From Camelus dromedarius (taxonomy: Eukaryota), in the NCBI RefSeq assembly GCF_036321535.1, contig NC_087451.1, positions 19,034,001-19,098,000 on the forward strand: DNA of 64,000 nt, written 5' to 3'. This document shows, in pieces, positions 36,681 through 38,151 of this stretch. Under the pieces are notes generated by a model. That model saw only the letters and a program-made list of their open reading frames with translations. It was not told the DNA's origin and searched no databases. A program made the position numbers and the translations under genes. Every line of letters begins with the position of its first letter. Position 1 is the first letter of the stretch.

Positions 36681-38151
36681 ATGGTGAGTGTGGGGGCCAG
36701 GGGAGCATAGCCCCTCTCCCTGTAGCTCCTGGCTGCTTTCCTCTCCTCCCCTAAAACTTCCCAATTATCCTAGACACCCACAAGTGAAATTCACAATCAT
36801 GAACCCAGATGTCCCTGGAACCTGTGACATCACACAGACACACAGCATCTGAGGCTCCCTCCCCTCCTCAAACCAACAGAGCATCCCTTGGTCCTCTTTT
36901 TCACTTCCCAGGAACAACTTACCCAGAGAAACAGGATGCTCCAGGACTGCTCACTCCCTGCTTCCTGCTTTAGAAGCTCAAGGCACACATGTACCACCTC
37001 ATCCATCTTTCAGGCCCTTTCTAGCTCCCAAGAGTTCCTTAGCAAGACCCTCTATTGTCCCACAGGGTCCCAGAACCCAGCCTGGCATTCACCCTGCCCC
37101 AGGTCCCCCGGGCTGTGGCTGCCCTAATGCCCGAGCTCCTTTCTCCCTAACAGGCTGCCAGTCACCCCTACTTCAACCTGCCCAACTTCACCCAGCCATC
37201 ACCGCCCTCCACTCCGCCCAGCCTCCCCTTGCACCAGTGCTGCCAGCCCTCTGATGCCACCAAGGGCCTGCTCATGGCCCTGCTGGGTGGGGGCCTGCTC
37301 ACTGGCTTCATGGGCCTCTTCTCCCGTGTGGCTTACCAGGCTTCCCACTTACCCTCGCTGGAGCTGCTCAGATTTCGATGCTTCTTCCACCTCCCCATTG
37401 CCCTGCTGCTTAAACTGCATGGTGAGCCACCGTTGGGACCTCCAGATGTCCGGGGCCAGGCCTGCCTCCATGCTCTGCTCAGAGTCCTCAGCATCGGATG
37501 CACCTACAGTGCGGTTCAGATGGTGCCCACTGGCAACGCTGCCACCATCCACAAAGGTTCTTCCACCGTCTGCTCTGCTCTCCTTACCCTTTGCCTTTAG
37601 AACCAGCGTCTCAGTGGCTACGACTGGTGTGCTTGTTGGGCAGCACCCTGGGACTCATCATCGTTGTGGGACCTGGGCTAGGGACACTGCAAAAGGGGAT
37701 CATGGGCTTCTATACCACTCTGGGCTACGTGCTCGCTTTCCTGGATGGCCTGGCCCTGTTGCCAGACTTTCTGCCTTCCGACAGTGGCCTTCCGACAGTG
37801 GCCTTCCTGTTTGGCTTGGTGAGGTTGGTGGGCTCCGTGCTGGGCCTCTTTGTGCAGCGGACCTCTGTGCTGCCCAACGATCCTCTGAGTTGGAGCTGTG
37901 TGTGGACAGTGGGGATTTATGCCCTGGTCTCCTTTGTGTGCCCGAGCTATGCGGTCGCCAAGGCCCATCCCACCCTAGTGTGCGCCGTCCTGCACTCTGA
38001 GGTGGTGGTGGCCCTGATACTGCAGTATTATGTGCTCAATGAGACCATAGAACCTTCTAACATCATGGGGGCAGGGGTGGTGTTAGGCAGCATTGCCATC
38101 ATCACCGCCCAGAACCTCAGCTGTGAGAGGGAAGGGCAGGTGGAGGAGTGA
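36681..38151 (+). pseudogene. SLC35G6: Disabled SLC35G3/SLC35G6 (AMAC1-like) DMT-family transporter gene nested antisense in ZBTB4 intron 1
   Basis: ATG-only exon 36681-36683 (ATG|gtgagt) and exon 2 from 37154 (cag|[35 protein letters not shown]). In-frame TAG at 37598-37600, 1-nt frameshift near 37631-37634, deletion plus 14-bp tandem duplication at 37773-37800. The original C-terminus CEREGQVEE* (TGA 38149-38151) is in another frame. AATAAA at 38189-38194. Confidence 0.85.

Follow-up and report, generated by a model that had tools for sequence, protein, structure and literature searches.

The locus examined here raises the question of whether camels have lost a gene on which male fertility depends in the mouse, and whether anything has taken its place. 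Slc35g3 encodes a Golgi UDP-GlcNAc transporter of round spermatids, and work from 2025 established that male mice need it to be fertile: knockout males are sterile, and their sperm fail to pass the uterotubal junction, to bind the zona and to fuse with the oocyte. Loss-of-function alleles in humans are suspected of raising the risk of infertility (PMC12611266). In the literature we found no report of a loss of the orthologous SLC35G6 in camels. All coordinates below refer to the window, i.e. the whole stretch of 64,000 nucleotides of the dromedary genome (Camelus dromedarius, contig NC_087451.1) that was analysed.

The SLC35G6 locus of the camel

Positions 36681-38151 of the plus strand hold a two-exon remnant of the intron-containing SLC35G6 orthologue, the counterpart of mouse Slc35g3. 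Exon 1 extends at least over 36492-36683 (+), according to an RNA contig (L010) whose bases 1-193 match window 36492-36684 at 100%. Its last three nucleotides are the start codon ATG (36681-36683, +), which is directly followed by GTGAGT, and in the alignment ATG|GTGAGT is identical in Bubalus, Orcinus, Panthera and Diceros. The intron (36684-37153, +), delimited by alignment with the four intact orthologues and C. ferus, has an intact GT donor and AG acceptor; the polypyrimidine tract is followed by CTAACAG|GC at 37153|37154, with the same letters in the four outgroups. A first reading of the DNA from its sequence alone (the sequence-only reading) had described two exons with both splice sites intact, and this description holds letter for letter at donor and acceptor. 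Exon 2 (37154-38151, +) is the remnant of codons 2-338 together with the TGA at 38149-38151. A likely polyadenylation signal, AATAAA, was read from the sequence at 38189-38194 (+), 38 nt past the stop codon; one contig (L014) ends at 38219 and other contigs continue beyond this position.

The frame that starts at 37154 gives 148 residues of recognisable transporter and then meets a TAG, and the frame one base back continues after this TAG-ended piece to the natural C-terminus. PF00892 (EamA) matches both pieces, with E = 1.3e-7 and 9.7e-10, each above the gathering score. In the protein search the closest proteins were mammalian sequences annotated as "solute carrier family 35 member G6" with 75-78% identity, while the rodent matches were named Slc35g3/AMAC1 or "testicular condensing enzyme". 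The locus thus resembles SLC35G6 (AMAC1L3) and mouse Slc35g3 in its place just upstream of POLR2A on the same strand, in an exon 1 of which the ATG alone is coding, and in its two EamA halves. A further ATG upstream, at 36617, opens MAGVLKGPGSLSQEERRKSKER (region 36617-36683), which in the camel does not share the frame of the ATG at 36681; in the orca gene model, the equivalent ATG is used in frame for a 360-aa isoform.

For the comparison of gene order, the genes of Bubalus, Orcinus, two felids (including Panthera) and Diceros were taken together with 3 kb of flanking sequence to either side. At all five loci the gene that follows on the same strand is POLR2A, and all five are colinear with window 33.0-41.2 kb, i.e. 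over about 8 kb, with breaks only at two masked N runs. Colinear blastn hits with loci whose next called gene is POLR2A place the start of the POLR2A region, which serves as the synteny anchor, at 39723-41260 (+), and Rpb1 domains follow downstream at 50146-50694. On the upstream side lie a large C2H2 zinc-finger exon of a ZBTB4-like gene on the minus strand and a Mab-21-type ORF at 3130-4488. The camel window fits the order TMEM102 ... ZBTB4 - SLC35G6 - POLR2A, which we take to be that of human 17p13.1. The human SLC35G6 gene has been placed at 17p13.1 (PMC11406361). Since the intron is present, the camel copy is not a retrocopy, and its syntenic position likewise rules out a processed pseudogene; the earlier view that this is the parental, intron-containing locus stands on the retained intron and on the POLR2A synteny at five loci.

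The intron (36684-37153) and the spacer of 1.4 kb towards POLR2A (38152-39557) are about 80-88% identical to those of other orders, roughly like the pseudogene's coding exon. The masked N runs that flank the gene, at which the cross-species alignments break, lie at 35345-35522 and 39558-39721; others are found at 33419-33558 and in five more places, and the letters within these runs took no part in the analysis. Two contigs from RNA-holding studies (L001 and L002) extend across the spacer toward POLR2A, and L001 reaches into the masked run at 39558-39721.

Lesions in the reading frame

Four intact 338-codon orthologues (Bubalus, Orcinus, Panthera and Diceros) served as the reference for the lesions. 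Codon 150, which is GAG in all four outgroups, is TAG in the window (37598-37600, +), a premature stop that is common to this genome, C. ferus and eight Logan contigs. Codon 161 (GGC) has lost one G at the junction 37631|37632 (+), and this 1-nt deletion, shared within Camelus, shifts the final 177 codons out of the frame set by the ATG. Also shared within Camelus is a 24-nt deletion by which codons 205-212 (SLGLLVYR) are gone; it sits between CTGG direct repeats inside the second EamA half, and its junction at about 37761-37762 (+) is ambiguous by a few nt. At 37773-37807 (+), the 14-nt unit GCCTTCCGACAGTG is tandemly duplicated (2.5 copies with a 100% match according to TRF), and the five bases CTCCT are lost just upstream of the repeat, so that repeat and loss together amount to net +9 nt. 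The duplication alters five more codons and is private to this genome, being present neither in C. ferus nor in any Bactrian-type contig.

Exon 2 measures 998 nt, and the ATG and exon 2 together come to 1001 nt as opposed to 1017 nt, which agrees with the sum of the events (1017 - 1 - 24 + 9 = 1001). The sequence-only reading had pointed to a TAG at codon 150, a 1-nt deletion near 37631-37634, a length of 1001 versus 1017 nt and radical substitutions around GGLPAG, and all four were recovered, the length from the exon lengths and the substitutions as changes to the outgroup motif GGGLPAGFVGP in the camel. The indel that it had placed at 37760-37800 is real and amounts to net -15 nt, but it is not a single event and consists of the shared 24-nt deletion and the lineage-specific net gain of 9 nt. 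With the TAG at codon 150, the 1-nt deletion in codon 161 and the 24-nt deletion, no uninterrupted frame of about 338 codons exists; the frames left open comprise 149 codons and then 172 (C. ferus type, P0069) or 175 (this genome). A second, compensating frameshift, considered on account of the peptide FCLPTVAF in the original frame, was rejected, as the 14-nt duplication puts the same letters in two frames.

A known human allele allows the consequence to be judged. In the T179HfsTer27 allele of human SLC35G3, which resembles the camel case in that the same transporter is truncated inside or before its second half, UDP-GlcNAc transporter activity is lost in vitro (PMC12611266). Since this allele is inactive, the stop at codon 150 together with the frameshift would, by analogy, not leave a working transporter, and no transporter activity would be expected to remain at the camel locus. 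In humans the truncation is a rare polymorphic variant, and the gene affected is a retrocopy of the family, whereas the camel lesion occurs earlier (codon 150), affects the parental gene and was found in every camel sample examined.

Substitute copies, constraint and transcription

A dead parental locus could be accompanied by an intact SLC35G3-like retrocopy, or by another transporter, that keeps the function elsewhere in the camel genome. Copies arise readily in this family, as human has three further copies on other chromosomes, namely SLC35G3, SLC35G4 and SLC35G5 (table in PMC11406361). The C-terminal half, the N-terminal half and the last 120 residues were searched against 5.8 billion proteins, including NCBI annotations and camel reproductive-tissue RNA contigs; these searches are at the protein level, and the Bubalus and Orcinus clusters, both large, were seen only among the matches listed, which leaves some room for such a copy. 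Against it speaks that no intact camelid paralogue was found in the 5.8 billion proteins, where the camelid matches were fragments of this locus only, nor among the listed members of the nearest clusters. The only unplaced full-length match (P0023) belongs to an intron-bearing parental orthologue of another mammal. Altogether, we consider a surviving substitute unlikely. No alpaca or llama sequence appeared in the protein searches with both halves and the last 120 residues. Four sequences (P0023, P0034, P0055 and P0064) were considered as camel retrocopies and rejected because they are nearest to other mammals; the contig of P0023, as the parental locus of its species, is 77% identical to the window. 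Another match (P0122, 85%) is primate-like.

Selective constraint was estimated by maximum likelihood with a Goldman-Yang-type codon model (F3x4) over 318 codons, with the lesion codons masked, on the tree ((window, C. ferus), (Bubalus, Orcinus), (Panthera, Diceros)). With a single omega for all branches, a value of 0.20 was obtained (lnL -2344.12), whereas a separate omega for the three camel branches resulted in 0.78 as opposed to 0.09 in the background (lnL -2320.72; 2dlnL = 46.8, p = 8e-12). Fixing the camel omega at 1 did not worsen the fit (p = 0.36), and the profile 95% interval of the camel value is about 0.47-1.35. The dN/dS comparison that the sequence-only reading had named as a check therefore gives a camel value that cannot be told apart from 1. 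A crude parsimony count of 47 nonsynonymous versus 8 synonymous codons was set aside in favour of the likelihood value, as synonymous states arise repeatedly in the outgroups, so that such counts yield too high an omega. The outgroup proteins are about 97% identical to one another and the camel has states absent from all four at 47 codons, and therefore the camel differences are not due to chance. In addition, 107 residues do not vary across 24 other mammalian orthologues, and the camel changes 14 of them, where most species change 0-6. Within Camelus, exon 2 differs at six sites (0.6%), four of them nonsynonymous, and the whole 3.6-kb locus at 0.48%, i.e. the divergence of exon 2 is equal to or above that of the surrounding non-coding DNA. 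On these estimates the camel copy appears to be evolving neutrally. It differs from the SLC35G6 of other mammals, with their open 338-codon frame and an omega of 0.09, in its stop, frameshift and deletions as well as in this apparent neutrality.

The camel branch runs from the base of the artiodactyls and covers roughly 60 million years. For the dating, an omega of 0.09 before inactivation and of 1 after it was assumed. On this assumption, the value of 0.78 would imply that about three quarters of the camel branch passed without constraint, with a lower bound of at least about 40%, which would point to a loss of constraint that is tens of millions of years old and happened well before camels and llamas diverged. 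If the loss is that old, llamas and alpacas are predicted to share it. That disabling lesions are few mildly favours a younger date, and faster evolution before the loss would inflate the age estimate; stops and indels are somewhat few for a very old pseudogene, yet compatible with chance.

The remnant is still transcribed, and its splicing is seen in one RNA contig. This contig (L010) consists of window 36492-36684 and 36911-38450, with the splice joint from 36683/4 to 36911/2, and thus makes use of an upstream alternative acceptor AG|G (36910-36912, +). The upstream acceptor lies 242 nt before the canonical one, so that the mRNA keeps 242 nt of the intron, and the frame opened by the ATG in such an mRNA runs into a stop at 37125-37127, after 79 codons. 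A second contig (L012) begins exactly at 37153, the point where the de Bruijn graph branches if canonically spliced and intron-containing molecules coexist, which is only suggestive of their coexistence. Of the words, a share of 0.6-0.85 is present in RNA-seq runs from three studies (labelled organism C or "reproductive system metagenome"), as is expected for a relative that is about 1% diverged. The AG of the upstream acceptor is kept in Bubalus, Panthera and Diceros, and not in orca; because it is conserved in buffalo, jaguar and rhinoceros, the alternative 5' exon structure at 36910-36912 may be ancestral.

As the locus is transcribed and spliced, as each half has an open frame that scores as EamA, and as the intron and flanks are well conserved, it might be thought to yield a working product still, be it by readthrough and frameshifting, as two half-transporters or as a regulatory RNA. 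This is very improbable, since the camel omega lies far above the background and is indistinguishable from 1, 14 otherwise invariant residues are altered, the second EamA half lacks eight codons, five further codons are altered by the 14-nt duplication specific to this genome, and the spliced form that was observed stops after 79 codons within the retained intron.

We are therefore highly confident that SLC35G6, in its ancestral position upstream of POLR2A, is a unitary (unprocessed) pseudogene here, which is still transcribed and would encode no working transporter. In the course of events that we propose, the stop at codon 150, the frameshift at codon 161 and the 8-codon deletion in the second EamA half would already have been present in the common ancestor of dromedary and Bactrian camel, and the lineage of this genome would later have gained the 14-nt duplication and the 5-nt loss. 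The promoter, the start codon and the splice signals have survived, which accounts for the continued transcription and splicing of the locus in reproductive-tissue RNA. What is left would encode at most a stub of 149 residues and roughly five helices, which presumably could not act as a 10-helix Golgi UDP-GlcNAc transporter.

Distribution of the lesions and meaning of the loss

Independent sequence data were available for the genus. A contig of the C. ferus assembly (L009; KE537579.1, GCA_000311805.2) aligns to window 35858-39425 and differs from it by 17 substitutions and the indel block, the divergence between the dromedary window and C. ferus being about 0.5%. The TAG and the deletions of 1 nt and 24 nt are all present in this contig, and the 14-nt duplication is absent. 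Eight Logan contigs from eight runs (L001-L003 and L010-L014) are of the C. ferus type with all three shared lesions, and vary among themselves only at 37310 and 37325. For the exact allele of the window, including the private duplication, the share of sampled 31-mers recovered is 1.00 in DNA runs of organism A that cover at least 13 samples; six of these samples (S22-S27) carry no flag as a possible source of the assembly. One organism-B run also has the allele.

The lesions are not an assembly error, and the loss is established for Camelus, namely for this genome, C. ferus and the Bactrian-type RNA contigs. Single-base deletions in G runs are a common type of error, but the probability that the true gene is intact is negligible, given the same three lesions in the separately sequenced C. 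ferus assembly and the eight Logan contigs, the exact window allele in DNA runs of many samples and studies, and an omega near 1 that does not hang on any single base. Since the lesions are common to this genome and to the Bactrian and wild Bactrian types, they predate the split of those lineages. The sequence-only reading had left the lesions to be compared with other data, and they now recur in the assembly of C. ferus, in the eight Logan contigs and in many runs of DNA. Its proposal of a unitary pseudogene is upheld in that a genuine pseudogene at the parental locus, its lesions in independent data and relaxed constraint were found; where it had spoken of camelids, the scope that stands is Camelus. 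The altered sperm glycosylation that it had derived from such a loss would follow by extension from the mouse knockout. As a separate observation, the positions 37310 and 37325, which differ between this genome and C. ferus, are polymorphic in the Bactrian-type contigs (Val/Met and Arg/Cys codons), consistent with free drift.

The lesions also explain a protein in the databases. A 214-residue ORF (P0001) is 97% identical to that of the window, and its cluster holds "solute carrier family 35 member G3, partial [Camelus ferus]" (EPY72586.1). This model (P0068) reaches 269 residues by the jump ...LLLKLH|EPASQW..., at which the frame is changed and the stop and the frameshift are hidden as an intron. 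The C. ferus "partial SLC35G3" model is thus an annotation artefact with an invented intron, and is flagged here as a mis-modelled protein in the C. ferus annotation.

Camels are fertile with a broken gene, and therefore the function is either provided by a different gene or dispensable for camel sperm. A fertile lineage that has lacked the gene for millions of years would mean that the requirement is not universal among mammals. The loss points to compensation by another UDP-GlcNAc transporter or to different needs at the sperm surface, which can be approached through a comparison of camel and ruminant sperm glycoproteins, and it bears on the interpretation of the human alleles. In the mouse knockout, LYPD4 and EQTN are among the affected proteins. 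The chances appear evenly balanced that camels, and probably all camelids, are without any working SLC35G3/G6-type transporter. If so, a step that is indispensable in mice would be done differently or be unneeded in camelids, which would then represent a natural knockout for sperm glycoprotein maturation.

The type of event is a familiar one, of which this is a new example, i.e. a unitary pseudogene of a fertility gene in at least two camel lineages. ADAM3 offers a parallel, as it too is needed for sperm passage and egg binding in mice and is dispensable in another mammal, being no longer active in humans (PMC12611266). Unlike ADAM3, which is a sperm surface protein, the camel case concerns the supply of a sugar nucleotide and thus another gene and another step of the pathway. 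The interest of the camel locus lies in the contrast with the mouse phenotype and is tempered by signs of decay in some bats. Two bat SLC35G6 models, labelled "LOW QUALITY PROTEIN" by NCBI, are heavily diverged, namely those of Glossophaga mutica (P0032, 276 aa) and Molossus nigricans (P0058, 229 aa); both have many changes at sites that are conserved elsewhere and may represent independent losses. The models of manatee, gundi, humpback whale and fallow deer are also flagged as low quality, yet look largely conserved.
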